DNA of 63,704 nt, filler included, from Octopus bimaculoides (taxonomy: Eukaryota): the NCBI RefSeq assembly GCF_001194135.2. It is 4 parts of 4 records of this genome, joined end to end, with 100 filler letters (N's around TTAATTAATTAA, not from the genome) between each part and the next. Parts side by side here need not be neighbours in the genome. Positions count along the whole stretch, not along the records: positions 1 to 27,629 come from NC_069006.1; 3 more parts are not named here. One strand, 5' to 3'. The notes under the pieces are model-generated. The model worked only from the letters and a program-made list of their open reading frames with translations. It was not told the origin of the DNA and searched no databases. The position numbers and the translations under genes are program-made. Positions 2,099-29,529 of the stretch are shown here, piece after piece; positions within the stretch are counted from its first letter, which is position 1; the number at the start of each line of letters is the position of its first letter.

Positions 2099-2399
2099 AT
2101 ATATATATATATATATACAAATATATAAAAACACTATGCTTATTATTATATAAGGAGATGAATTTGTGTGTGTGTGTGTGTGTGTGTGAGTGAGAGGAAG
2201 AGTAGAAGATAAAAGCTGTGACTTACTTATGGAAGTCATCAATACAATGAATTTGGTTGGTAGCATCGACTGTAAAAGGCACACCATCAAGACTTTTACC
2301 ACAGACCACACATGTGAAACAGGAAGGATGGTAGGGTTTGCCCGTAGCTCTCAACAACTGGTAGCAGTGCCATAGTGATCATATTGGTGGGTTGAGTGG

Positions 2400-3403: not shown

Positions 3404-3434
<31 letters not shown>

Positions 3435-3904: not shown

Positions 3905-4145
3905 GAATCTTATATGTATACCATTCTGCCTAAACAATGGATTTACAAATACAATATCCCTACATTTACTCTCTATTTCCTATCTTATCTAAACTAACTA
4001 TTGCTTAACCATCCTCTCACACCGTCTCCGTTAAAGGGATATAATAAATATCCTGGAAACAGCTGTAAGACCTTCTATTTATAAATGTTCTATATTATAC
4101 ACAGCCTTGGTTTTTTTATCTCATTACGAAAAGTAAATCCTTATA
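3905..4145 (+). mobile_element. Penelope-like pseudo-LTR relic with degenerate hammerhead motif
   Basis: gtct-ccgttaa-aggga..tcct-g-gaaac-agct-gta-agac at 4024-4071. Confidence 0.4.
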
Positions 4146-4146
4146 T

Positions 4147-4177
<31 letters not shown>

Positions 4178-5014
4178 ATTAATAATAAAAGGGTAAAATT
4201 AATTGATTAAATTAATTAATCAATCAATTAGCTATATATAGACTATATATATATATATACTACAAAATGTACATGTAGGACAGACACGACAACCCTAATA
4301 CTTCATCAGTTATCGACCCAAAAATACTAATACCTAGTTTCATGCTTTTAATGTTAAGACTAGGAACTTTGTATATCGGCGGCACCTGCAAGATGTGCAG
4401 AGACAACCTGCCTGACTTGTCTCTACATCACAATATCAGCACAACAATGAGACCAATAACTCTACTTACCCGATCAATAACAGGTTTTGAACAAACTGAA
4501 CATTTTTCAAGGGTGTTCTGTAGAGAGAGAAAGAGAGAGAGAACATATTAAGGACATTATTACTGAGAGGTAAACCAGAAGTAGTAACAACAACAATAAT
4601 AATAACAGGGAACTTAAGTCAATAAGAGGACTTCTAAATGGTCATACAACCAGCTGAAAATAGTAGCCAAATCCCCTCTCAAATCACACTTTGCCATATT
4701 ACAGAATACATACATTAGATAAAATTAGTCCCAGACACCCATAAAATATTCATGACTGAATGTCTTTGGTCATAAGTTAATTCAAACAGGGTTACATAGT
4801 TGCATTATGCACATCTTGTGGATACAGTTAGATGTCTGATGTCTTCTACTGTATGAGTTAGAACTGCACATAGGTTACCATCATCCAGTCAGTTTCCAGT
4901 GCAGTGGTTAATCAACAACTGTACTTAGCAGTGTTACTGGTTATGATACACAGAACATATGTAGTGGAAAATTAAGATTTATCTTAATTCTTCTGATGTG
5001 TGTGGGGGTGGGGG

Positions 5015-5900: not shown

Positions 5901-6055
5901 CACACACACACACACACACACAAACTATGTATACTGTACAATCACATGGTACCTTTTTACAGGTAGGTGGACTGTACTTTTATGTGATATTTACATACAG
6001 CTAAGTAGATTATATCTCCTTGTGGTACCTATCTGCAGTCTAATAGGCTATATTT

Positions 6056-6520
6056 CATCATCATCATCATCATCGTCGTTTAACGTCCGCCTTCCATGCT
6101 AGCATGGGTTGGACGATTTGACTGAGGACTGGTGAAACCGGATGGCACAACATGATATATATACAGCCATTTGAGCGTGATCATTATCAGTGTTGCCTTA
6201 CTGGCACTTATGCCGCCGGCACGTGATAAAGCATTCGAGCGAAGTCATTGCCAGTGCCGCTGGACTGGCTCCTGTGCAGGTGGCATGTAAAAAACACCAT
6301 TTGAGTGTGGCCGTTGCCAGTACCACCTGACTAGCCCTTGTGTCAGTGGCATGTAAAAGCACCCACTACACTCTCTGAGTGGTTGACGTTAGGAAGGGCA
6401 TCCAGTTGTAGAAACTCCGCCAGATCAGATTGGAGCCTGGTGCAGCCATCTGGTTCGCCAGTCCTCAGTCAAATTTTCCAACCCATGCTAGCATGGAAAG
6501 TAGATGTTAAACGATGATGA
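6056..6520. mobile_element. Two RTE 3' UTR fragments, head-to-head (6056-6147 minus; ~6165-6520 plus)
   Basis: catcatcgtttaacgtccgc..catgctagcatggg motif and its reverse complement. Confidence 0.8.
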
Positions 6521-6673
6521 TAACAGATTGTACCAGGACAGTTGATTGGTACCATGTTTGGGTACAGTCCAAATGACTANNNNNNNNNNNNNNNNNNNNN
6601 NNNNNNNNNNNNNNNNNNNNNNNNNNNNNNNNNNNNNNNNNNNNNNNNNNNNNNNNNNNNNNNNNNNNNNNNN

Positions 6674-6704
<31 letters not shown>

Positions 6705-8671
6705 CTCAGCATATGCTGTGTCTTAAAAGCAACAACAGGAAAATGGTAGAGCAGTGAGAAAATGGTGATGGTGAAACATAGCAGTAGAGGAATAAGTGGT
6801 ACTCACAACATAACAAGATTCACAATAAGGTTTGGTCTCGATAGCATAGAAAGATTTACCACGGAGGATGGTCCCTGGAAATAGAAAGTGACAGTTAGTT
6901 AGGGTACTTGTAGTGGGGTACTATATGTGCTGTAGTGTGTTGCCTAGCATGGTTTGACCTGTAGCAGAGTGTGATGTCCTGGGCATGACCTTAAACTGCA
7001 TCTGGTAGTGGGACCCTGGTTAGGAAATTCCAGGGTTTCAAGCAGTGTGGAATCACTTCTTAGCCACTATTGTTCCAAGGTTAACTCTGACGCAACGTCA
7101 GGGTCCTGGCTATGGGTAAATAAGCATGTAACCACCCAAGCCAGTATATGTTGAAATCATGGGATGCAACATGGTGGATGTGAACTATTACTACAAAGAT
7201 ATCTTGCTGAATCAATTACAAATACCACTAAATGCTGACTGGATGAACAGACAACAAACCAGCAATGACCAGTATCAACAAGTTCGGTTAATGAATTACT
7301 GCTATCATCTATAGTCATGATGTGTGTGCAGATGAGATATTTCAGCTTGCAAAAGGTCAATGTGGCTAAACCCAAGCCAGACATTCATGCTGCATCACTT
7401 GATCTGGACATCTGGCCTGGAAGAGTTGCACTGGTCCAGGCGAGATGGGAAGTGTGATATGTGTCCCATGTGGTATGGTAACGAGTATAGTGTTAGGGTC
7501 TGTAGTATAGTATGGTGTATGCTGAAATGTAATGGGTCTCCACCTACTATTCTTTCTGGGAATAGAGGGTGGAAAATATGGAGGGATGGATAGAAATTTA
7601 TCCAGGGTCAAAGGATCACCAACTGACCAGGGCACACCAAAACCCAAATAGTGTAGTGGGCAGACATGAAAACAACAACACTATAGAGTAATGTGCATAT
7701 ATATATACAATGCAAAGTGTGTTACAATAGTTATGTGTATATGGTACAATATGTATGTATATAGTATAATTATATATATAAACTATAAATTATTTTAGAT
7801 GTTTACTGTTAATTTTTATAATAGTATTGATTATTAATTATTACATATAAGGAACAGAATAAACTATACATATTTTCATTTCCTTGTTTACAAACTATAA
7901 AATAGAGATAACATGTATATGCGTTATGACAGATGACAGTTAATAAATTTAAATCTGACATTGAAATAAGATGTAGATCCTCATTTGGTGTTATCTATAC
8001 GTAAATAGACATGCATTTCTTTTTGACCACTAAGCTGGGGATAAAGGATAGAGATTTTTTATTTACTTATAGTAGGGAGGGAGCTAAGAGTAAACCAAAG
8101 GACATTGTGGAAATACAAGAGTTATCATTTTAGTTTGTTTATAAAGCCTTAGTGCAGAACTGTGAATAGAACTACTTCTTTTGCGTCATGGTAGCTAAGA
8201 CAAAAACCCCTGGTATTGATTTTAAATGTCCTTTAAGTTTAATTACATTCCACTGATAACGTTCAAAAAGAAATTACAGGAGAATAATAATATACATATT
8301 TGTATTTTATTTTTTTATTATTTGCATGATATTGTTCACTTTTTGACAGAAACAGTTGTCTGGAAGTATTGGATAAGGAATTAATAAATCCATAATTAAC
8401 AACATAAATTAACAACATTAATAAATCCGTAATTAACAACATTAATAAATCCGTAATTAACAAAATCTGCTTCAGTTCACTTTATTTGATGTAATGCATT
8501 AAACATCGTTTAATGAATTATCTTTTTATAATGACAGTTTGGCTATAATACATTCAAATGGATATACGAAAATCATTAAAAAAACATACAACAGAAATTG
8601 GAAACCCAGGGAACAGTTCCCTTAGAAGATGAAATAACTTTTTCATCTGAATAAATATAATATATATATAT

Positions 8672-8982
8672 CATCATCATCATCATCATCATCGTTTAAC
8701 GTCCGCTTTCCATGCTAGCATGGGTTGGACATGTGTATATATATATATATATGGTAGTACATAAAAAGCACCATCTGATCATGGTCGATGCCAGCCCCCT
8801 CTGGCCCCTGTGCCAGTGGCACATAAAAAAAGCACCCACTACACTCTCAGAGTGGTTGCTGTTAGGAAGGGCATCCAGCTGTAGAAACTCTGCCAGATCA
8901 GACTGGAGCCTGGTGCAGCCTCCTGGCTTCTCAGTCGAACCATTCAACCCATACCAGCATAGAAAACGTTTGTTAAACGATG

Positions 8983-8985
<3 letters not shown>
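8672..8985. mobile_element. RTE 3' UTR fragments (short minus plus longer plus copy)
   Basis: Same family motif cacccactacactctc..ggaagggcatccagctgtagaaact. Confidence 0.8.
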
Positions 8986-9032
<47 letters not shown>

Positions 9033-9559
9033 CACATACACACACACACACATTCTGCTATATGGAATGTTACAAGTATATAAAGTATGATCTGTGTATA
9101 TATTTTATTAGCGGTGTGTGTATAATGCAATGTGTAAATTATGTGATGTGTGTATATGAGTCAATGAATGTGTCAAGTGTGTGCATATACTTACATATAT
9201 GTGTGTGGGTGTGTGAGTAAGTGTATATTTAGTGTGACCAACACTTGTAGCCAGTGTATTATGTTATGTTGGTCAGTAGGAGTCTTTCATTAAAATGTAC
9301 TCACTACTTGAGTTTTAATGAGGCTGCAATGTGTAATATTTACACACACACACACACACACACACCACACATGTACATATATACATACATACATACATAC
9401 GAACATACAAATAATTACATATAAAAACACAAACCCACCACAGAAACTCACAGACACTTCCTCTCTTATAAGCACTACACAGAAAACACACACACAAACA
9501 AACACAAACACTGTAGTTACCATTATAAGACAAATAGACGCAATGCACTCACAAATTAC

Positions 9560-9611
<52 letters not shown>

Positions 9612-10115
9612 NNNNNNNNNNNNNNNNNNNNNNNNNNNNNNNNNNNNNNNNNNNNNNNNNNNNNNNNNNNNNNNNNNNNNNNNNNNNNNNNNNNNNNNNN
9701 NNNNNNNNNNNNNNNNNNNNNNNNNNNNNNNNNNNNNNNNNNNNNNNNNNNNNNNNNNNNNNNNNNNNNNNNNNNNNNNNNNNNNNNNNNNNNNNNNNNN
9801 NNNNNNNNNNNNNNNNNNNNNNNNNNNNNNNNNNNNNNNNNNNNNNNNNNNNNNNNNNNNNNNNNNNNNNNNNNNNNNNNNNNNNNNNNNNNNNNNNNNN
9901 NNNNNNNNNNNNNNNNNNNNNNNNNNNNNNNNNNNNNNNNNNNNNNNNNNNNNNNNNNNNNNNNNNNNNNNNNNNNNNNNNNNNNNNNNNNNNNNNNNNN
10001 NNNNNNNNNNNNNNNNNNNNNNNNNNNNNNNNNNNNNNNNNNNNNNNNNNNNNNNNNNNNNNNNNNNNNNNNNNNNNNNNNNNNNNNNNNNNNNNNNNNN
10101 NNNNNNNNNNNNNNN

Positions 10116-10735
10116 NGTTGACTATATTGACCCCAGTACTCAAGTTGTTTTATCAACCCCGAAAGGACGAAAGGCAAAGTCGACCCTGGTGGAATTTGAA
10201 CTCAGAAATGCTGCTTAGCAGTTCACCCAGTGTGCTGACAATTCTTATTTCTTTATTGTCCACAAGGGGCTAAACATAGAGGGGACAAACAAGGACAGAC
10301 AAAGGGATTAAGTCGATTACATCAACCCCAGTACTCATCTGGTACTTAATTTATCGACCCCGAAAGGATGAAAGGCAAAGTCGACCTCGGCGGAATTTGA
10401 ACTCAGAATGTAACAGCAGACAAAATACGGCTAAGCATTTCGCCCAGCGTGCTGACAATTCTGTGTTGACAATTCTTCCAGCTCGCTGCCTTCGTTACAC
10501 AAATAATCCTTTCTACTAGAGGCACAAGGCCTCGAATTTGTGGGGAGGGGAATAGTCAATTACATCGACCCCAATGACGGGACTAGTCAATGTTTATCGA
10601 CCCTGAAAAGATAAAAAGTAAAGCCGACCTCGGCAGAATTTGAACTCAGAACGTGAAGACAGACGAAATGCCACCGCTAAGCATTTCGCCCAGTGTGCTA
10701 ACAATTCTGTCAGCTCGCTACCTTCGTTGCACAAA
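10116..10735 (-). mobile_element. Cluster of tRNA-derived SINE copies (family A)
   Basis: Repeated core cgaccccgaaaggatgaaaggcaaagtcgacctcggcggaatttgaactcagaa. On the minus strand it shows A-box-like ggcgagctggcag and B-box gagttcaaattcc. Confidence 0.85.
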
Positions 10736-11329
10736 TAACAACAACACATGCACAGGTTCAATTCCCCTCCTTTATTATTAGTCAATTGGTTAAATATCTA
10801 ATCAACTAACGAATCAATCGTTTGCTTAATTTGTTGGTTAAAGAGTCAGAGTCAATCGTTTATTTTGTTTCTGTTCATCAAAATTTCTTTAATTGCCATT
10901 TGCAACCTTAAGATTGGGTCAGAGAGGAAGATATAGAGATAACAACAGTCAACATAGAAAGCAGGTCTCGTGTCGACTGTGGGATTAAGAGGTTCATTTC
11001 CTAAATGCATAGCTTCAGGTTCAATCTCATGAAACAGCAGCACTAGGGACAAGTGATTTTTTTTTTACCATAGGCTCAGACCAACCCAAGCCTTATAAGC
11101 GATGCCTTCAGTGATGTTCAGTTTGTTGTATAAACAGAGAGGTCAGGCATCGGAGGGAGGGGGGTGAGGATAAGCTCATCACTTCCTGTAGTTGCCATGG
11201 CAATGACCTTCACCTTCTGACTAAGTCATACAGCAAACAACCAAAAAAAAAAGAGGTAAATAATCAAACACTTCACGTATTTTAATTACCAGCATCATCA
11301 GCACAATGTTACTATTACCAGTACTGTAC

Positions 11330-11770
11330 CATGGCCACTACCACTACCACCTTCACCACTACAGTACCACCACTACTACCACCAGTATGACAACAGTATC
11401 ACCACCAACATTTCTATAGTACCGTCACATTCACCAACACACCACTACCACCACTACTACCACCACTACTACCACCAGTATCACCACTAACACCAACACT
11501 TCTATAATACTATCACATTCACTACCACCAACACCACCACTATCACCAGTACCACAGCAGTGTTACCACAATCATCAATGCTTCTAATGGTACCGCCATC
11601 ACCAAAACAAGCACCACTACCACCCCACCACTATTTGACTACCACTATCACCATCACCACTACTATCACCAGTACCACAACAGTATTACTATGATCACCA
11701 ACACTTCTAGGGTACCACCACCACCATCCCCAACATCACTACCTATCACCACCACCACCCCATCGCCACA
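11330..11770. repeat. Degenerate (CAC/TAC)n trinucleotide repeat
   Basis: accactaccacc runs. Confidence 0.9.
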
Positions 11771-12029
11771 CATTACAAGTATTTTACATAAGTATTTTAT
11801 AAGTGACTTTATAAGACAAAAAGCGATTATGAATGTCACCTTCTGACAAATAGGCAAACAGGGACAAACAGACAGACAGAAAAACTGACTGGCACACACA
11901 CACTCACACACAGAGTTTGAGAATGCTAGATGTAAGGTAGGAATTTAACTATATACTAATGGATGTCACATGGAGGTACTAAATACAGGTGCCATGGGTA
12001 TTTGATAACTCTTGATTATCAGAATATAA

Positions 12030-13280
12030 CTCATTTCAAACCAATTAAAAAGTTTTCGTTTCCTTCAGATGCCCCACACACCCCACCCCATGGAATTATA
12101 AAATGCTAAAACAAGAAATGAAAAGCCATCCAGTGATTGTTGACATATGTGAGGAACGCAGTGATTTAGAAATTGCCAATGTTCTAAATGTGGCAGAATC
12201 TTTTGTGCACAAAGTTCAGGCAGAATTAAAAGCCTCCGATGGGAATGTTTTAAATGTATCGAAGAGAGAGAAAAGAAACATTCCAAAATGTTCAGACACA
12301 ATAAGGACACTGCAGTTCATCTAAAGGGTTCAGAACCTTATCAATGATTATCCTGGAAAATCAATGAGGGCCATTGCCAAAGAACCTAAGGTGTCTGAGT
12401 GGGCCATCAGAATGGTGGAACATGAGAATGTTCGACACTCAAGTATGTACTGAGAAGAGGCCACTTCATGCCTGGAAAGATGCAGGAAAACTGTTGGATC
12501 TATATTAAGCAGTCACTTAACAAGGTTAAAAACCCTTACAAACAAGAGAAATGATAGATGGTTATGTAAAGAACCTTCTGATGTCCCCAAATTTTCTCAC
12601 ATTTTTCCACAGGATCTTAAGAAATAAATGCTGCTGGAGAGAGTTATTAAATCCCAGATGGATGAAGTACACAATAGAAGGACATGAACCTTCTCACAGG
12701 GCCAACATAACCCAAGAATAGATGTCAGACAATCTTTGCAACAATATAACATCACATTTGTGCCTTCTAAACAAATTTAAACCTTTAACATTGAGATTCC
12801 TCTGTCAAATATGATGTTTATGTGGTCGTATTGTTTGGAATTGATCATGCATTATCTTGTAGCTGCAAGATTTTGATGATGCAACAGTTTATTTTTAGAA
12901 AGACATTGTAGGCTAGGTGTGAGAGGCTGGATCTGGCCATTTTGAACATAAAACAGGTAGAATATTTGGGCTGGATATGGCCAGTTTAATTGCTAAAGGG
13001 TTGAATCTCAGGACAACTGAATGTCTGGAGCATTCATGAAAGGGAGACAAATCAACATGCTCACAATGCCATAGCTTCACTGAAGCCTGTCAATGTCCAG
13101 GTGATGATCAAAATGAATAGGGACAATTTAGTGCAGGTATGTCAAGGATTCTAGTCTTGCACTGAAGAAGTTATGAAAGCCAAAGGTGGATTCATAGAAT
13201 AGTTATATAAGAAAGCTTATTGACATGTGCACGATTTTTTAATAAAATACATTTGTTTTTTTATGAGTTTAGAGTTGTTT
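12030..13280 (+). mobile_element. Degenerate Tc1/mariner-superfamily (maT-like) transposase remnant
   Basis: ERSDLEIANVLNVAESFVHKVQAELKASDGNV..PGKSMRAIAKE..; frameshifts and stops; interrupted by a MITE. Confidence 0.7.
12777..13004 (+). mobile_element. piggyBac-type MITE (~225 bp)
   Basis: ttaa-(a)cctttaacatt ... tgctaaagggttga termini; homologous to 13283-13894 and 37426-37654. Confidence 0.7.
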
Positions 13281-13282
13281 TA

Positions 13283-13894
13283 TCAACCCTTTAGCAATTA
13301 AACTGGTCATATCAGGCGCAATGGCCCAGGGTTTAGGGCAGCAGACTCGCGGTCATAGGATTGCGGTTTCGATTCCCGGACCGGGTGTTGTGAGTGTTTA
13401 TTGAGCGAAAACACCTCAAGCTCCACGAGGCTCCGGCAGGGGATGGTGGCGAACCCTGCTGTACTCTTCCACTACAACTTTCTCTCACTCTTACTTCCTG
13501 TTTCTGTTGTGCCTATAATTCAAAGGGCCAGCCTTGTCACACTGTGTCACGCTGAATATCCCCGAGAAGTACGTTAAGGGTACACGTGTCTGTGGAGTGC
13601 TCAGCCACTTGCACATTAATTTCAGGCTGTTCCGTTGATCGGATCAACTGGAACCCTTGACGTTGTAAGCGACGGTGTACCAACACACACACATCAAGCC
13701 CAATTGTTTTACTTGTTTTCACATTCAAACAAGTCAGATTCAGCCTTTCACACCTACCCAACACTGTCATTCTAAAAGTAAACTGTATCAGTCATTGAAA
13801 TCTCGAAACTATGAGATATTGCTTGATTAATTCAAAACAATGTAAATAAATAAGCATCACATTTGACAAAGTATTCTGAATGCTAAAGGGTTAA
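13283..13894 (-). mobile_element. piggyBac-type MITE interrupted by a tRNA-derived SINE
   Basis: Left end tcaaccctttagca and right end gctaaagggttaa; body homologous to 12777-13004. A further partial copy follows to ~14050. Confidence 0.65.
13315..13685 (+). mobile_element. tRNA-derived SINE (family B; Arg-TCG-like head)
   Basis: ggcgcaatggcccag..gactcgcgg..gtttcgattcccggaccggg head with A/B boxes, followed by ~300 bp of non-tRNA body. Confidence 0.8.
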
Positions 13895-14479
13895 CCTGGC
13901 CATATCCAGCCCAAATATTCTACCCATCCTATGTTCAGACCAGCCAGATCTGGCCTCCCACAATCATACCCTTGAAATCATGATTAATTCAAAACAATGT
14001 GAATAAATAAGCAATGCACTTGACAGAAATTAATCTGAATACTAAAGAGCTAAATTCCCAAATACAGTCCCAAATATCTCTCACATCCTCTACTAATTCA
14101 CATATTTACATAAAAGCAATTAACTATATATCAATATAGCCATATATTATCACATGGAGGGTAATTAGTGATATACAAATAGATATGTTGTATGAAGGTA
14201 ATTAATTGTACCCTAGTAGATTTATTACATGGAGGGTGGTTAATAGTATATACACTAATGGATATAATTTAAAATAACATGGAGATAATTTACTCTTTAT
14301 AAGTGAGGTGATATATCATGTGGAGGTAATTAACTCATTATACATGAGGTAATCATTTATGTACTACATTCAAACATTCAATGAAAGTGAAGTTTGAAAA
14401 CACATTGATATCTCTATCAGTATCTGAAGCAGCTCACACAACAACAACACAGGCAGCAGCAGCAGCAGCAGCAGCAGCA

Positions 14480-14510
<31 letters not shown>

Positions 14511-14512
14511 TT

Positions 14513-14728
14513 AAGGCAGCAAGCTGGCAGAATCATTAGCGTCCTGAACAGAATGCTTAGCGGTATTTTGCCCATCGCTTCATTCTGAGTTCAAATTCCA
14601 CCAAGGTCGGCTTTGCTTTCAGCCTTTTGGGGTTGGTAAATGAAGTATCAGCAAAACGCTGGGGTTGATGTAATCGACTAGTCCCTCCCTCCCCACAAAT
14701 TTCAGCCCTTGTGGCCAATAAAAAAAGG

Positions 14729-14760
<32 letters not shown>
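14513..14760 (+). mobile_element. SINE family A, full length with (ATT)n tail
   Basis: aaggcagcaagctggcagaa head, gagttcaaattcc B box, core, ggccaataaa..(att)n tail. Confidence 0.85.
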
Positions 14761-14761
<1 letters not shown>

Positions 14762-15320
14762 GAGTGAGAGAGCAGTGCATGCCATCAAAGTGACACTGGG
14801 GTAAAATATACGAAGTCCAGTGTACCCATCATGACTACCCGTCTGATAAGGGTCCACCAGGCACATGCATCATCACAACCATATGTGCGCAAGATGGTGA
14901 TCTCATATCAAGATAAACAGTGCATGACCTTGCAGGTGGAGCCCAGTTAGCATTTACTTCAGATCGAGTAGCCCACCCCACTCAAAAGGTCCCTGAATAA
15001 GGGTTATTTAAGTATGTTGTACAAAACACCCATGTTTCCAAAGGTGAATTATCCAAACCCCAAAGAATTCCTCTCAACACATGACTATGATGCTCTCCCA
15101 CTACTTCTGCTCATGATCAGAGATGCACGTATCGTCAGCCACCAAGGGACATGCTCAGCTGGTTACGGTCAAACAACTGACAAGTAAATCTGTGGTATTG
15201 AGCAGAATATTTGCTGTAGCCCATCTTTTATACCAAGACAAAACAATGTACATGATAACACTTCCAATCAGTTAAGATCAGAAGCCATGAGAACCACTGC
15301 CTGGTACTACATCAGGGTTA
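14761..15320 (-). mobile_element. Dispersed repeat with (AAT)n tail, probably a LINE 3' UTR (second copy 52700-53063, + strand)
   Basis: Long homology to the reverse complement of 52700-53063. Confidence 0.7.
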
Positions 15321-15469
15321 CTATTAACAGTAGAGGTAGTGAGGAAGTTTCACTGCAGCCACTTGACCTTAATATGACAATTAAATTTCCCCACAACAAA
15401 CTCCTTACTGTCATTAAAATAGGGACCACTTAATTCACTGAAGGAGCTTCTTTGTAGTCACTTGATCTT

Positions 15470-15985
15470 AACATTTTGGCACAGGGCCAGCAATGTTTAG
15501 GAGTGGAGTAAGTCGATTACATCAACTCAAGTTCACTACTTTGATAAGAATAACAATAATGGCTTCAAATGTTGGCACAAGGCCAGCAATTTGGGGAGAA
15601 GGACTAGGTCAAAGTAATCACCCCCCAGTGTTCAAGTGGTACTTATTTTTCTGACCACAAAAGGATGACAATCAAAGTCAACTTCAGCAGAATATGAACT
15701 CAGAACATAAAGTCAAACGAAACACCACTAAACATTTTGCCCAGAGTTCTAATGATTCTGCCAGTTCACCACCAGACTTGGTCATAATATTACAACCAAA
15801 TCCAGGGCAGCAAGCTGGCAGGATCGTTAGCAAGCCAGGCAAAATACTTGGTGGTATTCCATCCCATTTTACGTTCTAAGTTCAAATTTCGCCGGGGTCA
15901 ACTTCACCTTTCATTCTTTCAGGGTTGATAAAATAAGTACCAGTTGAGCACTGGGGTTGATCTAATCAACTTAATCCTTTCCCTG
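15470..15985. mobile_element. Degenerate SINE family A copies (minus, then plus)
   Basis: Core motifs ggcacaaggccagcaattt, gaactcagaa, gggttgataaaataagtaccag. Confidence 0.7.
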
Positions 15986-16593
15986 AGTTCCACAAGAGAG
16001 TTCCACCAAATCAAGCCAAACACATCTATGGCCATTTCAGGAGTTCTCTGCTGTGGTTCGAGTGGAACTCTCTTACACTCCTGGACTCCAACCTACCTTG
16101 GTTTTTATGAAATGAACTTTTTTGGCATACTTTTATGAGGGGAGGAAGAACAAAAAAAATTTTTTAGTCAATTGATATTTTATTTTATTTAGATTTTTAG
16201 TCAAATGACACACTTTAGAACTTTTAGTCAATTATATATACCTTCTAGATAGGCCGTTCTATATATTTGTATTTTTATTTGCATTATATATTTTTTACCT
16301 TCTGTGCTTTTTTTATATATGTATTCTTTATATGATAAAGGCCATGGTAATATTTATATATGATCAAATGTATGAAAGCGTGGCATTATATAAAGTCGTT
16401 GACTCAAATTTGATGTTTGTTCTCTAATCAATGTTTTTTTTATCTCTGTCTCAATTAAATTTGAGCACTTCTTTTTAGCAGTCTCATAAACCCTTTTGTC
16501 TCCATAAAAAGAGGCAAAAATTATTTCTTGTCATATATTTCATTTCAAAGTTTTCATTTCAAAGTTTCAGCTCAGAGCTGCGGCCATGCTGAG

Positions 16594-16682
16594 ATGTGGC
16601 ATTAATATAATTTATTAACTGCAAAAATTTAACAGAAAATATGCTGAATTTTTGCAGTTAATGAATTATATTAATGCCACAT
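16594..16682. repeat. 36-bp inverted repeat hairpin, 17-nt loop
   Basis: Arms 16594-16629 and 16647-16682; 1 mismatch. Confidence 0.9.
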
Positions 16683-16954
16683 TTCCTGGATTTTAATTTG
16701 AATACTTATAAACCAAGATTTATACTTAAAACCTATTATTTTATGAATATTACTATTCACAAAAAAACATAGGCAATAAACCAGTAATTTGTTGGATATT
16801 TTTATCCTTTAATGAGGCTATTTTAACTTCTATTTAAATAAATATATATATATAGATAGAAAAGAGTAGAAATTGATATCATTAAATAATATCAATTTCA
16901 ACCAGTGGTCAGCATACTTAAAAATGTCTGAGGACCGTGAATTCTATTTAAACA

Positions 16955-17270
16955 TAAACAATATGAGAGACCACTATATGAATCCCTTGTATGCTAACTC
17001 TATACATTCATATCATTTCACAGAGACGGGTGGTATCCAGTTCCATTGTTGTCAGCACCAATTTCACTGAGGACACACAGACAATTATTGAATTGTTCAT
17101 GTCGAAACCTTGAGGTATGGAATTAAGTGCTATGTTTATTTCTTTTCATTTGTGTAGCTCGTAAACATCTAGTGTGATACTAAGTTGAGAACACAGATTT
17201 AGTGGTAAGACAGTTTGACGTCTATTTTTAGCATACAAGAGATCCACATAGTGGTCTCTCATATTGTTTA
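16955..17270. repeat. 43-bp inverted repeat pair separated by 230 nt
   Basis: Arms 16955-16997 and 17228-17270; 3 mismatches, all transitions. Confidence 0.9.
17008..17108 (-). CDS. Candidate terminal coding exon (GFDMNNSIIVCVSSVKLVLTTMELDTTRLCEMI*)
   Basis: AAG acceptor at 17110-17109 after cttaattccatacctc; phase-1 compatible; TGA at 17010-17008. Weak support. Confidence 0.25.
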
Positions 17271-17296
17271 TATATATAACGATCGTACTGCATTAC

Positions 17297-17407
17297 CTCT
17301 AGATATCCTGTTGCTTATTTCGATTTCAATCACCTTATTTTGAAACTGTATAGATAATACCGTGCTAAATTCTGGTGCCTCAACTTCAGTACCATATTCA
17401 TCTGAAT
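17297..17407 (-). CDS. Next coding exon (111 bp, phase 1-1): (N)SDEYGTEVEAPEFSTVLSIQFQNKVIEIEISNRISR(G)
   Basis: Acceptor ..atttag at 17409-17408 and donor G|GTAATG at 17296. Phase matches the 17778 donor and the frame is open. Polypyrimidine tract is weak. Confidence 0.55.
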
Positions 17408-17418
17408 CTAAATTTTTA

Positions 17419-17476
<58 letters not shown>

Positions 17477-17778
17477 GAGTCAACAGATGAAATCCAGAGA
17501 TGCTCAATATAAAAAACATTTCATAGCGCTCAAATGATTTGAACTTACAATCCAAAATCCAAAGTCCATGGGGTAAAGAATCATTGTAAAGGGAATCCAA
17601 GTGAGAAGATGTAGAGATAATGATGCAAATTAACAAATGAAACAGCTTGAGCCAGACATACAATATATACATATAAATAGAGAGAAAACAAAGATGGCAA
17701 CACCATACCTTCTCCCCTTAATAATGCAACAACAAGAGAAACGTGTAAACAAAATTAAGAAAAAAGAAAATTCCTTAC

Positions 17779-20700
17779 TTTTCTCATAAACCTGATAATG
17801 AAATTGTTCCTGAGTTGCAACAAGGCGTTTGTTGAAGAAACTGCACAAGGGACAGTACAAGTAGCAATGTTCTTGCAACTGGTGTGGCAATGCATAGTTG
17901 CACTTCTGACAATGTGATGCACCATCGCATTCGCATTGCTTGCACTGAGAAAATGAAATGCATTCCGGCTTTGCCCCACCACCCTCATTGAACAATACTG
18001 ATGTGGGACAGAGACTATCAAATGTCCGGTGACGGCAGAAATCCACAGCCTCGAGTTCCTGTAAGGCTTCTTTTATTCTCTGCTCAATGTCTGTGAGGAA
18101 GGGCATCTCACTGTGATTGTCATTTGAATTTGTGATTTGTTTTGGGTTCTCATAAGAAGGGACATACCAAGATGGGGTGCGGATGACTGTGGTGCATGGG
18201 CCGGACTGTTGTTGTGTAGGGGGTTTGAGTCTGTTAGAGGAGGAACCCAAATTGACAGAGTTAGGGTTGTGGATGTGATTTAAAGATATGTGATCTCCGT
18301 CAGATGGGACTAGGTTTGAAACCTCGTTGAAACTTTCGCAGATGTTATGTTTGACATAGGCACCGTCTTGGCTGCTGTCACAGGAGTAACTCGTCGAGAT
18401 GTAGGAGTTGAGATTGTAGCAAGAAGGAGAAGTGCGGAGTTTGTTTGGAAAACACTGAGGTGGGTCAGCATTGGTAGGGGTTACAGGGTCCACATAGTCT
18501 GTGTCAGTCGACCCGTTTCCATGGAAACCTGCCTCCTGTGATATTGATATCTCATCAGCAATTGTGTTCTCAGGCATGGCACTAATACTGCTGTCTTCGC
18601 AACATTCACCAAAATCTTCATCACTCAAGTAATCTGGTACATCGGATTCTGACTTGAGACGGTATATGACTTTGTTTATGCGTTGGTTCAGTTCCTCCGT
18701 ATAAGTAAAAGCATCATCATCATCATCATCATCATCGTCATCATTGTCATCATCATCATCATCAGCATCAGCATCATTATCACCAGTGTCATTATTGGAA
18801 AATGAGTCGGAAAAGTTTTCTGAATTAGAAAGCTTTAAAGTGGAACAGCTGGAAAAATGACGTTCTTTGATATTCTTTTTCTCATCCACATATTTCACTT
18901 TATCAGGAGCACCATCACTGCAGACAGGATCATCATCAACATCATTGCTGTCATTAACTTTATAATAATCATGACGCTTATCATCATCATCATCATCATC
19001 TCCATTACCAACATCATCAGTGTCATAATTATCTGTGGTAACAATCAACTGATTAGAATCCATCCGTGTTAAACACCTGTGGTCAGGTGAGGACTGGTCA
19101 TCAATACTTAAGACAAGACCAGTGTCCAGCTTCTCCACAAGTAAATCATTTGGTAACTCCACTTCCTTAGTTTCTTCATTGTCTGACAACGAAGTATTCC
19201 CCAACACGATGGGCCCATCAAAAGCACAATTGCTCACATCGCAGTCCCTACCAAGATTATTCAAGTCCTCACAGCTTTGACCAATTATTCTCAAAGTTCT
19301 CCACTTTGGATGAGGTCCTGCAAATGATTCCAGCTGTTTTATGATATTTCCGATGTTGCTAGCTCTTTCAGGAATTTCCCGGTTCTTTTTAAAATCCTCA
19401 CAGTCTGAACATTTCGCATTGGATATTTCCAGTTTCCTTACAATGTCCTGAACTTTAAGTAAACACTGCGAATCCTGGAATTTATCAGAATTTTCGACAG
19501 TGGATGAATCAACAGGATTCTGTATTTCAGGAATGCTACAAGGGGGCACTGATATGCAGGTCATAGGTGTATTAATCTCAGTTAAACTTGAACTCCGACT
19601 TAAAGAAAGAAAAGCCTTCCCAGAACTCCTCTTGGTGCTGTAAACAAAACACCGTTCCCCCATGTTAACCGATGGTGATGTAAAATTATTTCTCGACGTC
19701 TGTGACGATGTATTCTCTGCACAGTTTGATGCTGTCTCTTCACGGTTCAATGCATCTTCTGTAAAGTTCTCTACACAATTATTTTTATCTTCATTCAACA
19801 CATCAGTTGGAGCTGATATTTGCTGCAGATGGAATGCTGTCTGAACAGGTGTTTCATTATCGATTTTGTTATCAACTGAAGGTTGACTGATGTCCAAACA
19901 GGAATGAGTGACTATTTGACCACAAGGAACCCAATCCTGATCCGGAGTCCTGTCGCACGTGTCAGCAACACAGGCAGGACTGTTACTCATATTTAAAGTA
20001 GGAGAGATGGTCACTTGAACTGGTGTTTCTGATATAGATTGGCTAAGCGTTTGACTGGGACCACAGTTTCCATCAAGGGAAGAATTCACTGAATCATCCA
20101 AGGATTGATTTTGCAACTTTTTATCAGCAGTCAAGGCTATTTTGTTTTTACTGGATTGGCAAAACTGCAACTCCATATACCGAATGATGTCCCGCACACA
20201 TCTCGAATTGCAACTGAGATCCTGCACACATTCATCAGAGCAACGAGAAAAGTCACATTGGTATTCCCCATCATTGCTAAGTGCTCCGAAGAAACGATCA
20301 CGCTGCTGGGAATGAGGAGAAGATGGTCGAGAATATCGATGAAGATGATGATGATGATGGTGATGATGAAGATGTAGATGCCTATCTGGGCAATTAGAAG
20401 AAACATCTACAATTACTGCACTTGGCTTCTCAAGTGCTCCACTTGCTGTAGAATGATCCAATTGAGATTTAATTCCGGTTGTGTGGAAATCAGAATGATT
20501 AGAATGTATGGAATTGGGTGATAAATCCTGTGCAGGAGAATCATTTGTCACTGCGGCTGTCACTGAACTGGTATCACTGTCCTGCTTTGTGGACCTACAA
20601 AGTACAGAACCATTGGGTCCTGACTCAGGAGTGTCTTTTACTGAAGATACTTCATTTGTAACACAGGGTTTTCTGTTACAGCAGGCAGAGGTCCCTAAAT

Positions 20701-21541
20701 CTGAGTGCAACACACCCCTTCTTTCAAATTGAAATTTTTTATCAGCAACATGCCCGTTTGTACATTTTCCCTGTGGTTTTGTTACTGATGATCTGCAACA
20801 GACAGTCCTTTTAGGGGAAACACCTAATTGCGATAGTAAATCTTCGATCCCTGTCGTGAGGGTTCTGTGTAGAATTTGGTTCAATTCCTCATTGCTTTTC
20901 AAACTTTTCAGACACTCAAATGGCATATAAATACTTGCGAGTTCTGTGAGCAGTTCATCTGAAGACACAAAGCCCATGTTAGCGTTTTGATTGATAGAGT
21001 TCTTTTGAAATTGAACCAGCTTCACACCCAGGCTCCAGTTACTGCTGTTATGCTGTATCATCCAGTTCTTAAGGCTTTCCAGTACATACACATTATTTAT
21101 CATGCTATCATTGCTGCAGTTATCTTCATCTTCTGCTTTATTCTCCTCTTCTTCTTCTTCTTCTCTGGAGTAATTCGACATGTCGACCTGTTGTGTAGAA
21201 TTGAGGCCTGAACTGCAGGCGCCCCACAAAATCCGCATTTCCTGGAGAACTCGTGTCACAAACACATGGCTGCTCTCACTTCTAACAACATTGGGGAAAC
21301 CAACAAGATGAAGAACATCGTGGAGGACTGTTGCAACATGTTGTGGCTTCTTGGACTCGATAGCATGCAGAATGAGCATCTTGCTAGCAGAATCCTGATA
21401 ACAGAAGATGTAGCTGTACTTCCAGTCAGAGAGAGATTCCATGTTAATTACATTCATCGTGGCAGAACTTTGTTTCATCTTAGAGTTGGATCTGGTCCCA
21501 GAATCAGTAAACATACTTGTTGTTGTTGTTGTTGTTGTTAG
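17779..21541 (-). CDS. Giant coding exon of a host gene: N-terminal inactive KRBA2/SCAND3-like (Ginger2/TDD-type) integrase fold, long Ser/Asp/His-rich low-complexity region, C-terminal Cys/His cluster
   Basis: Uninterrupted 1294-aa ORF (21514-17630) in an otherwise stop-riddled window. aa ~20-215 (YSYIFCYQDSASKMLIL..VA..L.D....GFPNVVRSE...W; NWMIQHNSSNWSLGVKLVQFQKN; EELNQIL) match the KRBA2-type integrase pattern from memory. Pyrimidine-rich acceptor ..tcattacag ends at 21542; donor A|GTAAGG at 17778. Only triplet repeats occur inside the ORF. Confidence 0.85.
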
Positions 21542-21852
21542 CTGTAATGATGGAGGTAAGTGGGGAGTAGATGAGGTTCAAACAGTGGTACTATTTTAGT
21601 TGTAGTTGTAATATTATTATTATTATTATTATTATTATTGGTGCTGTTAGTGGTATTGCAGTTGTTGTGGTTGTTGTTGTTGTTGTGTTTGCTGTTGTTG
21701 TTGTTGTTGTTGTGGAGGTGGTGGTGTTGGTGACAGGGAGGAGATTAGGTTGTAATAGTGGTATGCCAAGCTTGTTGCTGTTGTTGTGGTGATATCAGTG
21801 TTATTGCTGCTGTTTGTGGCTGTTGTTGTTGTTGTTATTGTGATGGATTTAC

Positions 21853-21948
21853 CATCATCATTGTTGCTGTTAAAGTATTTTTGTCATAATAGTTGCAAAG
21901 ACTGTTGATGTTGTTGGTAGTGGTGATGGTGATTGTGGTATAATCCAT
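21853..21948 (-). CDS. Candidate first coding exon (MDYTTITITTTNNINSLCNYYDKNTLTATMMM)
   Basis: ATG at 21948 and phase-0 donor ATG|GTAAAT at 21852 join in frame to the phase-0 acceptor at 21541 (311-bp intron). Sequence is low complexity, so this could be chance. Confidence 0.35.
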
Positions 21949-21980
21949 TAGTAGTAGTAGTAGTAATAGTAGTAATCCAT

Positions 21981-22012
<32 letters not shown>

Positions 22013-22267
22013 ATCCTCTGTTTCAATCGCCAGCTACTACATGTCTCCAAGTTGACGTAGTGTAGACTCAAAGCAAGGTGTGATAGTCACACTAGGAAGG
22101 GATATTCCCAACGTGTTGGAATCGCAGTATAAAAGCAAATCTCCATGCCGACCACCCAACCAGACACACAAACAGTAAGAGCGAGAGGGGGAGGGTTGTC
22201 TATCACACACAGTTCCATCTAACACAAAGGACGCAGGAACCTACCAAACTACTTAATACAAGCCCTG

Positions 22268-22884: not shown

Positions 22885-24231
22885 CGCACACACACTCTCT
22901 TGTGTATCTGTGTATGATGCACTCTGACTTTCATGTCTCATACACACACACATGCACATACGCACACACACGAGCGTGCACATGCACACACACACTGTTT
23001 GGCAACAGAATTAACTACATACACCAAGAACTATCACATAACATAACATCCGGTGGGGGGGTGGTAGTGGTGGTGGTGAGGGTTTTTTTTTTTTAGTGGG
23101 GCGTGTAATTGTAACGGTGGGTATGGTGGTGGTAATAACAATGAACTAAAACAGTGGTGGTGGTGGTGGTGTTGCTGGTGGTGGTGGTGTNNNNNNNNNN
23201 NNNNNNNNNNNNNNNNNNNNNNNNNNNNNNNNNNNNNNNNNNNNNNNNNNNNNNNNNNNNNNNNNNNNNNNNNNNNNNNNNNNNNNNNNNNNNNNNNNNN
23301 NNNNNNNNNNNNNNNNNNNNNNNNNNNNNNNNNNNNNNNNNNNNNNNNNNNNNNNNNNNNNNNNNNNNNNNNNNNNNNNNNNNNNNNNNNNNNNNNNNNN
23401 NNNNNNNNNNNNNTATCTTCTTTTGTTTTTTGTTTTTATTTGTTTTTTTTTATATCATTGTTGGAGGGGGGGGGACTGTTTCTATTATTTATTTTTTTTT
23501 CAAAGAGGCTAGAGATGACCAATTCTTTGACCAATTCTTTGACCAATTCTTTCACTGTAGCAACAGCAACAGCAGCAGCAGGTGTGAGCCCATGAGAATG
23601 CCTCTGTGTGATTGCATGACTTCCTAGAAATAGCAGCCAAATTTCACTTCAATCAGACATACACAATTGTAAAAAAAAAAAAAAAGATGCATTGAATGAT
23701 ATAGTCCTAAATACACTATTCTTGTAAACTAGATGAGGTGGTCACAACAGGAACAGCTTTGTACTTAAGTTTTCATGATCAAGACTGACCCAGGACTAAA
23801 CAACAACATGGCAAAGCACTATATAGTTGCTTGATTTGCTAGAAATAGCAGCAAATCTTCTTTAATTAACAAACTACCAATTAAAAAATAGGAAGGACAC
23901 ATTAGTTAATATAATCCTAGATACACCAGGTCTGAATAAAGGATGGGATGGCCACAACAGGAACATCTCTGTTAAATGAGTATGTGTGTGTATATATGTG
24001 CATGCATGCTTGTGAGTGTATGTGTGCACACATGCAAGTATTTGTGTGTATACACCCAATTCCCCCTGCCCCTTTTTTTCTTCCCTTAAATGACTCATTC
24101 ACTGTTCACATCCGGTGCATGATTCTAAGTATTGTTCATGCACACTTTTAGCTACATTTTCTATGGAATTGTAATGCACCTGAGCACGATAGACAATAAG
24201 TTCATTATTATTATTATTATTATTATTATAT

Positions 24232-24554: not shown

Positions 24555-24555
<1 letters not shown>

Positions 24556-25200
24556 AGGTGGTGAGCTGGCAGAATTGTTAATACGTTAGATGAAATGCTT
24601 AGCAATATTTCACCTGTCGTTACATTCTGAGTTCAAATTCCGCCAAGGTCAACTTTGCCTTTCATCCTTTCAGGGTTGATAAATTCCCATATTTTAACCC
24701 TTTTTTGTCAAAAATTAGGTTAAAAAATATGGGAGTTTCTTAAACATGGATAGTATTATAATCCCTTACAAAACCTTTATTCCAAATTTTAAGCCCCCAA
24801 AATTAAGGGTTTCCTTATACATGAGGGTCCCTTATACAGGTTAAAATATGGTAAGTACTAGTGAAAACACAGGGGTCGATGTAATCAACTAGTCCCCTCC
24901 CCCAAACTTTGAGGCCTTGTGCCTCCAGTACAAAGGACTATTATTATTATTATCATCATTATTATTATTATTATTATTGAAAGCAGTGAGCCAGCGGAAT
25001 CATTAGCATGCTGGACAAAATGCTTAACGGCATTTTGTCCAGTTTTATGTTCTGAGTTCAAATCCTACTGAGGCCAACTTTGTCTTTCACCCTTTCAGGG
25101 TTGATAAAATAAATATCAGTTGAACGCTGCGAGTTGATATAATCAACTTACCTCTCCCCTGAAACTGCTGGCCTTGTGCCAAAATTTGAAACCATCATTA
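24555..25200 (+). mobile_element. Two SINE family A copies; the first is interrupted by a ~170-bp MITE at ~24685-24853
   Basis: SINE core split at gataaa|..|agtactag. MITE ends ccatattttaacc / ggttaaaatatggta. Confidence 0.75.
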
Positions 25201-28878: not shown

Positions 28879-29260
28879 ATTACCTCCATCTTAGCAAAGG
28901 TGGAGGTATTGTTTTTACTTGTATTTGTTTGTTTGTCCATGGACAAGATATCTCAAGAATCACTGGATGGATTTGGATGAAACTTTCAGAGATGTTTGGC
29001 CTCATGATTGGCATGAACTGATTAGATTTTGGGATTGATCTAGTACCGGACGAGGATTCTGGATTCTGGATTCTGGATTTTTTTTTCCTGTTTTTTTTAC
29101 TTAATTTTTGAGAGCGGTCAGATTCATTTTTAGTATTCTTGTATGTGCGAGCATTCGAGTTTATTTCAGATACTCTCATTTAAAAAAAATTATCTCTGGC
29201 TAATCGTTGAGAGGATATTGGTGTTGCCTTGGCAGAGACTTGCGCTGTCTGAGTGCTCAT
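28879..29260 (+). mobile_element. Helentron-associated (HINE/DINE-1-like) non-autonomous element
   Basis: 5' palindrome acctcca..tggaggt, (tttg)n microsatellite, body ggatttggatgaaacttt..gattagattttggg, 3' gccttggcagag..gagtgctc. Confidence 0.5.
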
Positions 29261-29529
29261 TTATTTATGGTTCAGTCAAATGAGGAAAGGCCTCATCAGC
29301 TTTTCCAAGTCCTCTGAGATGGTAGAAGGAAGGGTGAAAGGAAGAATGGGACGAGGGAAAGATGGAAGGGAGGCACTTGCTCTGAATGCTTGCAACAGAA
29401 CGAAAGGCAAAAGTGACCTCAGCAGAATTTGAACTCAGAACGTAAAGACATTTGCTTGTTAGTATCATCCGGATTTTCACATCAATGGCTCGGATCTCAT
29501 CAAGCATCCAATCAAGCAGCCCAAATATT

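Follow-up and report, generated by a model that had tools for sequence, protein, structure and literature searches.

A catalytically dead Ginger2-type integrase core as the probable N-terminal head of an LPP/zyxin-type LIM protein in Octopus bimaculoides

Domesticated Ginger integrases and the octopus gene

Host genes made from transposases or integrases are, to our knowledge, well documented in vertebrates and rare in invertebrates. Here we describe a probable case from Octopus bimaculoides, found in a stretch of 63,704 nucleotides (assembly GCF_001194135.2) that is called the window below; the exons concerned lie in the part that comes from NC_069006.1 (positions 1 to 27,629). Several described systems come close to it. 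KRBA2 and SCAND3 (ZBED9), the 'cellular integrases' of mammals, go back to GINGER2 transposases according to Llorens et al. (2012, PMC3575427), GIN1 and GIN2 are Ginger1-derived genes of vertebrates (PMC2836005), and Imagin is a Ginger1-derived integrase-like gene of malacostracan crustaceans, a comparable case published only in 2026 (Hao et al. 2026, PMC12863088). The Ginger2/Tdd transposons themselves have an H2C2 zinc module, an intact catalytic Asp-Asp-Glu (DDE) triad, 50-180-bp terminal inverted repeats (TIRs) with TGTNR termini and 4-bp target-site duplications (TSDs) (Bao et al. 2010, PMC2836005). Domesticated integrases are known already in the form of KRBA2, SCAND3, GIN1/2 and Imagin; a fusion to an LPP-type protein such as that of the octopus is not described in the literature searched.

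The 3.7-kb frame makes up coding exon 1 of an octopus gene with six exons, which is orthologous to O. sinensis LOC115224746. The encoded protein is laid out as an integrase-derived head of ~200 aa, a linker of ~900 aa (acidic, His-/Ser-rich and mostly disordered, with a few short conserved motifs), a pre-LIM motif with a remodelled LIM1, and canonical LIM2 and LIM3. A first-pass annotation of the window had described a ~1300-aa protein with a large disordered scaffold; the mostly disordered linker was found, but the scaffold belongs to a gene of the LPP/zyxin/TRIP6 family, whose pre-LIM region it forms, and the LIM exons downstream in the window had been missed. We take the best explanation of the whole to be a dead but constrained Ginger2-type integrase head on an octopus LPP-type scaffold, and estimate the probability of this reading at roughly 0.7.

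With KRBA2 and SCAND3 the gene has in common the probable source clade of the integrase and the status of a constrained, apparently single-copy host gene that is chimeric with host domains. The mammalian proteins, however, are full-length transposases joined to KRAB or SCAN (plus hAT dimerisation) and occur in mammals only (PMC3575427), whereas the octopus protein has the core only, has lost the triad, carries the core at its N-terminus and has an LPP-family LIM partner. Pfam detected no KRAB or SCAN domain in the octopus open reading frame (ORF), in which the head starts 15 aa past the initiator Met. Since these domains are absent and the partner gene is a different one, the octopus gene represents an independent event in another phylum and is no ortholog of KRBA2 or SCAND3, in line with what the first-pass annotation had supposed.

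Imagin is likewise an invertebrate Ginger domestication under purifying selection, with a lost DDE triad and a proposed non-catalytic role (PMC12863088), but it stems from Ginger1, has kept H2C2 and is a stand-alone multi-exon gene inside an MMUT intron, whereas the octopus head is without H2C2 and is fused to an LPP-type protein. GIN1, GIN2 and yeast Fob1 are also host genes on a Gypsy/Ginger-type integrase core; judged by their published descriptions, they differ in architecture and in having no LIM fusion, GIN1/GIN2 coming from another source lineage and Fob1 from another kingdom. Relatives of the active Ginger2/Tdd type share the DDE-core family with the octopus core (23-30% identity over ~200 aa), but H2C2, intact triad, TIRs and TSDs are all absent at the octopus locus. 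An integrase-derived N-terminus was seen in no other LPP/zyxin/TRIP6 family member examined. The novelty of the gene lies in the retention of the integrase core only, in its N-terminal position, and in its fusion to an adhesion/mechanosensing LIM scaffold rather than to a transcription-factor or DNA-binding module or standing alone. The head offers a tractable test of an integrase fold stripped of catalysis and zinc fingers, and the gene a marker for cephalopod modification of a conserved mechanotransduction protein.

The integrase-like head and its active site

The window was compared with the O. sinensis locus (L002, on CM016884.1, reached via the longest isoform, X1) and with a distant cephalopod-like locus (L001, contig ERZ21867824:ctg121405l of ENA assembly ERZ21867824). 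The parts of the first exon that concern the head are the following.

17779..21514, minus strand: coding exon 1; begins with ATG (21514-21512), 1245 complete codons followed by base 1 of an Arg codon that the intron splits
21203..21469, minus strand: N-terminal half of the core, codons 16-104; beta1-beta2-beta3-alpha1-beta4-alpha2 of the predicted RNase-H-like fold, with both former catalytic Asp positions
21452..21454, minus strand: codon 21, AAT (Asn), in the first catalytic Asp column (consensus Q-V-D); Asn in O. sinensis, Cys in L001
21275..21277, minus strand: codon 80, GAG (Glu), in the column of the second catalytic Asp (Q-S-D-N-G in the consensus, R-S-E-S-S in the window); Glu in the three cephalopod-type loci
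21101..21202, minus strand: acidic low-complexity insert, codons 105-138, 34 aa of poly-Glu/Asp in place of beta5 and the G-S-V-E-R segment
20825..21100, minus strand: C-terminal half of the core and family-specific extension, codons 139-230; W-M...N-W-S-x-G...V-Q-F-x-x-N, including W151, W160, G163 and Q168

Homology of the head was assessed with an exhaustive phmmer search (query aa 1-230) of a library of 1.84 billion protein representatives. Of the 290 matches at E<=1e-3, 30 reached E<=1e-10; many matches cover residues ~16-220 in one stretch, and E-values reach 1e-13 for single-domain relatives. A word-indexed homolog search, which appears to miss proteins much longer than the query, gave one match for the full ORF, where low-complexity words swamped it, and for aa 1-230 only the protein P0002. 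Sampled relatives bear rve, Integrase_H2C2 and the SCAND3-type zinc finger PF23663. Among 42 relatives, rve was present in 29 (E<=1e-3), H2C2 in 21 and Znf_SCAND3 in 6, reverse transcriptase, RNase H, protease and chromodomain were present in none, and one relative bears the NCBI name 'KRAB-A domain-containing protein 2-like'. This is the architecture of Ginger2 transposases, the clade that gave KRBA2 and SCAND3. A placement in Ginger2, and not with Ginger1 or LTR-retroelement integrases, is supported indirectly by the Znf_SCAND3 and H2C2 domains of the relatives, by the KRBA2-like name, by the lack of reverse transcriptase, RNase H and protease in them, and by the single-sequence PDB search, in which no retroviral or Ty3 integrase was matched.

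Profile comparison gave the same picture. When a profile of the three cephalopod-type sequences alone was aligned with a profile of 19 relatives alone (hhalign), a probability of 99.9% and an E-value of 3.4e-34 were obtained over 180 aligned columns, with the integrase-like span at aa ~15-218. The combined family profile reaches solved integrases, with that of prototype foamy virus (PFV) in first place (1.8e-15), followed by those of mouse mammary tumour virus (MMTV), Ty3 and human immunodeficiency virus. An AlphaFold2 (AF2) model built from a 45-sequence alignment had a mean predicted local distance difference test score (pLDDT) of 78.7, with blocks of aa 21-100 at 88-98. The first-pass annotation had named a Foldseek comparison and the Pfam family rve as checks of the head. 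In the former, the top 50 matches of the AF2 model in the PDB were all retroviral integrase catalytic cores (probability 1.0), the best of which superposed over ~82 residues at ~3 A (PFV/MMTV). From the phmmer matches and the profiles, with which the AF2/Foldseek result is consistent, aa ~15-218 are judged to be a former DDE-integrase catalytic core of the Ginger2/KRBA2/SCAND3 type; the pattern had been noticed at aa ~20-215 in the first reading.

Several points weigh against this reading of the head. Pfam, rve (PF00665) included, returned no family at E<=10 for the ORF or for aa 1-235, so that an rve match was not obtained at any threshold; the relatives' own rve scores were 24-32 bits in a scan of 10 proteins, for a cutoff of 32.6. 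A single-sequence phmmer search of the PDB yielded no integrase, neither a retroviral nor a Ty3 one. Single-sequence AF2 was unusable (pLDDT 34). The AF2 model described above was built on the integrase alignment, so its fold is not independent evidence and was counted as consistency; its global TM-scores (template modelling) were a modest 0.3-0.45, with beta5/alpha4, which make up the second half of the fold, not recovered. In principle, the negative Pfam and single-sequence PDB searches and the failed single-sequence model would fit a spurious similarity, due to composition or chance, of an N-terminus with an unrelated fold. The chance that this is so appears negligible: the 290 whole-library matches are colinear over ~200 aa, the two profiles that gave an E-value of 3.4e-34 were independent of each other, and the family-invariant W151, W160, G163 and Q168 are all kept. 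With Pfam and the single-sequence PDB search negative, the integrase assignment needed the exhaustive search and profiles.

The catalytic D, D, E triad of the head is lost at all three positions. The first-pass annotation had given these changes as N21 (T19-M20-N21), E80 (R78-S79-E80) and replacement of GSVER by an acidic insert, and its residue numbers proved exact. The column of the third residue, Glu, corresponds to Met138 when the register is read back without gaps from W151. The insert has an AF2 pLDDT of ~52-68, and beta5 is not predicted in it; its counterpart in L001 is shorter and consists of poly-Gln. Half of the 42 positions that are >=85% conserved in the relatives (21/42) are altered in the octopus core, clustering at residues 17-24, at residues 80-84, in the S-P-Y...F-G motif and among the conserved basic positions, of which 5/8 differ; the hydrophobic core is preserved, as are the invariant residues W151, W160, G163 and Q168. 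The net charge of the core did not discriminate it from that of active relatives.

Could the head still be an enzyme, a nuclease or transferase with a variant acidic constellation of E80 and insert residues? The Glu at the second position and the many Glu/Asp residues of the insert could in principle coordinate metal. In retroviral integrases, mutagenesis has shown that a single substitution at any DDE residue abolishes catalysis. The first Asp is Asn in the octopus and Cys in L001, which leaves no conserved metal ligand at this position; the insert differs by lineage (poly-Glu versus poly-Gln) and is predicted to be disordered; and the residues around the active site are broadly changed. We regard residual activity as extremely improbable.

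The features that surround the core in an element are missing as well. A tblastn search of the whole window with 12 full-length relatives gave matches at 21487-20840 only, so that there is a single integrase-like segment. No pair of long terminal repeats (LTRs) or TIRs flanks it; the repeats found were microsatellites and dispersed copies resembling short interspersed elements (SINEs), in agreement with the earlier statement that no TIRs or LTRs surround the frame. A vestige of H2C2 upstream of the head was suggested by '...EYKNSQYLHKFC...' in L001; relaxed tblastn upstream of the head in each of the three loci (window, L001 and L002) gave no consistent signal, and the candidate was rejected. 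Overall, only the core and its family-specific C-terminal extension survive, without the features that define Ginger2 (H2C2, SCAND3-type finger, TIRs and DDE). LIM domains and homology to the linker were absent from all 149 integrase-like representatives examined.

The top scorers of the phmmer search were proteins of tenebrionid beetles: P0003 (Tribolium madens, XP_044271340.1), P0004 (Zophobas morio, XP_063929970.1) and P0013. These proteins consist of an N-terminal THAP domain and three or four tandem Ginger2-like modules, in which the second catalytic Asp is mostly replaced (e.g. GSKEDW, QSREGA, ESSIGSQ). By sequence they have the appearance of a separate domestication, in which dead integrase cores form an array without relation to the octopus gene.

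Constraint, age and possible role of the head

The window is collinear with the O. sinensis locus over ~27 kb, from the upstream intergenic region through intron 4. The ratio of nonsynonymous to synonymous substitution rates (dN/dS) was determined for exon 1 of the window versus O. sinensis according to Nei and Gojobori, the core being taken as codons 16-104 plus 139-230. For the whole of exon 1 the ratio was 0.225. The integrase core gave a dN of 0.026 and a dS of 0.53, that is a dN/dS of 0.049 (bootstrap 0.02-0.10), from 11 nonsynonymous and 43 synonymous differences, and the remainder of the exon gave 0.31; the two halves of the core were similar (0.038 for the N-terminal and 0.058 for the C-terminal half). 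The protein identity to O. sinensis was 95.5% and 92.4% in the core halves and 85.9% elsewhere in exon 1. Within this exon, constraint is strongest in the core. Near-identical paralogs were not found in the protein libraries searched. The domestication proposed in the first reading was upheld by a single syntenic O. sinensis ortholog, the core dN/dS of 0.05, the conservation in L001 and this absence of near-identical paralogs, which together identify the locus as a probable host gene and not a transposon.

The synonymous differences are not evenly spread. In the first ~240 codons (20795-21514 versus L002 10001-10720) dS is 2.5x that in the rest of the exon (Fisher p = 2e-6), and the excess is directional: going from the window to O. 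sinensis, 46 changes are AT-to-GC versus 12 GC-to-AT (T>C 23, A>G 23, C>T 6, G>A 6). The GC content at third codon positions of these codons is 0.65-0.68 in O. sinensis and 0.47-0.53 in the window. 'Hard-wiring' of A-to-I editing was considered as the source of the excess and ruled out, because T>C on the coding strand equals A>G. The excess looks like lineage-specific GC-biased substitution or gene conversion, or like a hotspot of mutation at the gene's 5' end, and not like editing.

The more distant locus, L001, encodes the same head, with 48% identity in the N-terminal and 56% (55.8%) in the C-terminal half, and shares the downstream motifs IIRQLESFAGPHPKWRTL, FSFTEDVEQRLNTVIFRLKSESD and SWYIPGYENP, the Cys-rich exon end and a phase-1 donor. 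Between the window and L001 the proportion of synonymous differences (pS) is 0.84, which is saturated, and that of nonsynonymous differences (pN) is 0.33. The L001 exon (9474-13070) consists of five long open segments of 173, 363, 98, 333 and 326 codons, with a maximum of 121 codons in 8 kb of flanking DNA; since the long segments tile the exon, L001 is read as a coding exon with about four indels. Of the ~four frame switches, several lie beside A-homopolymers or a TG run and one falls exactly at the poly-Gln segment; they may be assembly indels or signs of recent pseudogenisation. The contig is chimeric. Positions 1-9000, including ~8.5 kb of bacterial DNA of 65-70% GC with a phn operon (PhnG/I/J), an ABC transporter and DctP, are joined to cephalopod-like DNA of 26-42% GC (9000-21062), the GC content falling from 68% to 34% ~600 bp upstream of the head. 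This is likely a misassembly of a host-associated metagenome, and the join cuts off the upstream context of the sole distant ortholog found. Two scans of JGI metagenomes with cephalopod-only profiles gave no further orthologs. From the shared head and motifs, the fusion is judged to predate the split of the octopus from the much more distant cephalopod-like lineage represented by L001.

The head might alternatively be a decaying Ginger2 fragment that is in frame by chance, without function, and part of the NCBI model by prediction only. Loss of the triad and of the accessory domains is what dead copies of transposable elements have undergone too, Pfam is blind to the domain, and a candidate 5' acceptor (see below) is not conserved. 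A fragment of this kind would not be expected to show the strongest constraint within exon 1 (dN/dS 0.05, 11 nonsynonymous versus 43 synonymous differences), nor to retain 48-56% protein identity to L001 at saturated synonymous sites; frame, ATG and upstream stop are conserved as well, and the fold-determining residues are kept. We consider it very improbable.

The origin of the gene could be pictured as follows. A Ginger2-like element would have landed in an ancestral LPP-type gene, either at the 5' end of its large pre-LIM exon or a little upstream of that, and the integrase core would have been captured in frame as a new N-terminus, as in host-transposase fusions, before the octopus and L001 lineages split. 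The head would no longer cut or join DNA. It may instead act as a folded module for protein-protein contacts or self-association, integrase cores being dimers, and could cluster partners on the scaffold or recruit them to it, while the LIM domains would target adhesion sites, strained actin or nuclear partners. Such a non-catalytic, protein-binding or oligomerising role is put forward tentatively, at somewhat less than even odds. It is preferred to nucleic-acid binding because the zinc fingers and most of the conserved basic residues are gone, because a poly-acidic loop occupies the old active site, and because the helices that form the dimer interface of retroviral cores are the best conserved part.

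With a head that binds nucleic acids, the LIM scaffold would be anchored on DNA, chromatin or RNA, which would extend the known nuclear shuttling and co-activator role of the LPP family; in a variant of this, the head would bind RNA in the cytosol, as proposed for crustacean Imagin. Yeast Fob1 binds ribosomal DNA. Fob1 sits in the Ginger2 branch (PMC3575427), integrase cores of the RNase-H fold contact DNA, other dead domesticated Ginger integrases have been proposed to bind nucleic acids (Imagin, PMC12863088), and the octopus head has kept the conserved basic K45 and K55. On the other hand, the DNA-binding zinc modules H2C2 and Znf_SCAND3 are both lost, as are 5/8 of the family-conserved basic residues, a 34-aa poly-acidic insert lies at the former active site, and the long linker is strongly acidic. 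We consider a nucleic-acid-binding head unlikely.

Returning to the proposal of a dead, constrained integrase head on an LPP-type scaffold as a whole, further points count against it. GC-biased substitution inflates the local dS; with the exon-wide dS the core dN/dS becomes ~0.10-0.13, which is still low, and since the dN of the core is the lowest in absolute terms the ratio is <=~0.13 even then. The evidence that the head is translated consists of the NCBI gene model and the dN/dS values. The ~four frame breaks and the chimeric contig of L001 make the age and breadth of the fusion uncertain. The evidence that separates protein binding from nucleic-acid binding is indirect, net charge being uninformative, and the gene may be the only LPP/zyxin gene of the octopus or a paralog. 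A more far-reaching suggestion, which we regard as doubtful, is that an LPP/zyxin-type mechanosensitive scaffold of coleoids, possibly the lineage's only one, was rebuilt, with loss of the Ena/VASP-binding proline motifs, remodelling of LIM1, expansion of the linker to ~900 aa and addition of the dead integrase head as an interaction/oligomerisation (or nucleic-acid-tethering) module. If true, an ancient protein of adhesion-to-nucleus signalling would have been rewired by a domain of transposon origin, in the lineage that evolved the most complex invertebrate tissues.

The LIM partner, gene model and neighbouring sequence

The remaining features of the gene within the window are listed here.

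17779..18178, minus strand: 3' end of exon 1, codons ~1113-1246; SWYVPSYENP, pre-LIM motif and remodelled first finger of LIM1; dN/dS 0.17, kept in L001
17777..17778, minus strand: exon-1 donor GT, GAG AAA A|GTAAGG, phase 1; the L001 counterpart, GAA AAA A|GTAAGA, is alike in phase and context
17630..17776, minus strand: intron read-through tail of the ORF, non-coding; similarity to the O. sinensis protein stops at ...QVYEK
6807..6874, minus strand: coding exon 2, encoding (R)TILRGKSFYAIETKPYCESCYV (LIM1, second finger); splice sites tttccag|GG (acceptor) and GTT|GTGAGT (donor)
4470..4517, minus strand: coding exon 3, NTLEKCSVCSKPVIDR, start of LIM2
2227..2357, minus strand: coding exon 4, 43 residues plus (K), remainder of LIM2; donor AA|GTAAGT
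19235..19534, minus strand: conserved linker block, codons 661-760, including ...IIKQLESFAGPHPKWRTLRII...; 97% identical to O. sinensis with a dN/dS of 0.06, 51% identical to L001
18641..18709, minus strand: short conserved motif FTYTEELNQRINKVIYRLKSESD, codons 936-958, directly after the poly-Asp tracts; kept in O. sinensis and L001

The O. sinensis ortholog served to identify the partner of the integrase head. Over its last 165 aa this ortholog shares ~80% identity with proteins named 'lipoma-preferred partner homolog' in arthropods, Lottia and vertebrates, and the similarity to LPP proteins of other phyla starts exactly at exon 2. The best PDB match of the LIM region is TRIP6 LIM2 (2dlo, E 2e-34), the next LIM protein following at 1e-14. 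Of the LIM region, the second finger of LIM1 and the whole of LIM2 are encoded by exons inside the window, and the exon 2 protein is 100% identical to that of O. sinensis. Upstream of these, the pre-LIM motif EMPFLTDIEQ... aligns with E-A-E-V-D-x-L-T-D/N-L of LPP homologs. In the first finger of LIM1, CxxC has become CPTS and (N/G)EGSG is kept, with insertions of 26 and 21 aa. As in LPP, zyxin and TRIP6, LIM2/LIM3 (~80% identity to invertebrate LPP homologs), the pre-LIM E-x-x-x-x-L-T-D and the T-T-E-L end (O. sinensis ortholog) are present, but the octopus pre-LIM region is ~1,150 aa long compared with a few hundred, the first finger of LIM1 is remodelled, and FPPPP/proline-rich motifs are missing. 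No [FLWY]PPPP motif or PPP run was found in exon 1 (Pro 4.5%), in a test in which the Xenopus and Gryllus LPP homologs were positive. On this similarity, we assign the gene to the LPP/zyxin/TRIP6 family of scaffolds, with the dead integrase as its head.

The minus-strand ORF 17630..21514 comprises 1294 codons. Its existence as a 3.9-kb stop-free frame was correctly noted in the first-pass annotation, but the last 48 codons (1247-1294, 17630-17778) are intron read-through outside the coding sequence, and the exon ends at 17779. Exon 1 is orthologous to exon 1 of LOC115224746, with 89.8% nucleotide identity to L002 10001-13736. Of the phase-consistent splice sites that had been claimed on both sides, the 3' donor (phase 1) stands; the candidate 5' acceptor, cattacAG at 21542-21543 (27 nt upstream of the ATG), reads CTG in O. 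sinensis, is not conserved and was rejected. The 3' site is the only verified splice boundary of exon 1. The start ATG and an upstream in-frame stop are kept between the window and O. sinensis. Mapping of the O. sinensis protein onto the window showed canonical AG/GT junctions and consistent phases for exons 2-4. The O. sinensis gene has six coding exons in the L002 exon map, and exons 5 and 6 (LIM3 and the C-terminal ...TTEL) fall past the start of the window.

The sole close database relative of the protein is 'uncharacterized protein LOC115224746' of O. sinensis (88% identical), for which the NCBI Gnomon models give isoforms X1 (1404 aa) and X2 (1332 aa) with a common initiator Met, and in which LIM (PF00412), in two stretches, is the only domain that Pfam recognises. 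Given a public annotation as 'uncharacterized protein' with LIM alone, and a head that Pfam misses, similar fusions have likely been overlooked elsewhere. The long, X1-like form is encoded by the window. Isoform X2 drops an internal segment of 72 aa between the poly-Asp tracts of the giant exon (window ~18760-18980, codons ~845-917); this removal may be an exitron-like alternative splice or an artefact of gene prediction.

Within the linker, the conserved block of codons 661-760 matched no Pfam family. A His-rich run (HLHLHHHHHHHHLH; 20320-20385, codons ~378-392) is identical in both octopus species and could be a metal-binding or low-complexity interaction element.

Directly upstream of the start codon, 21515-22040 consists nearly entirely of trinucleotide microsatellite (CAA/ACA, TAA and TAC runs) and has 84% identity to O. 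sinensis, below that of other non-coding blocks; a promoter and a 5' exon were not located in this region. For the neighbouring gene upstream, no last exon could be recognised within the window. Other ORFs of >=110 aa in the window gave no Pfam match, and the window is without tRNAs. A SINE-like dispersed repeat of ~150-170 nt, in which ARAGORN found no tRNA-like head, occurs in both orientations at 14513-14680, 15623-15971, 24555-24704 and 24980-25147, and also at 10117-10724. It recurs in O. sinensis L002 at ~23400-23830, 29260-29500 and 40490-40830.

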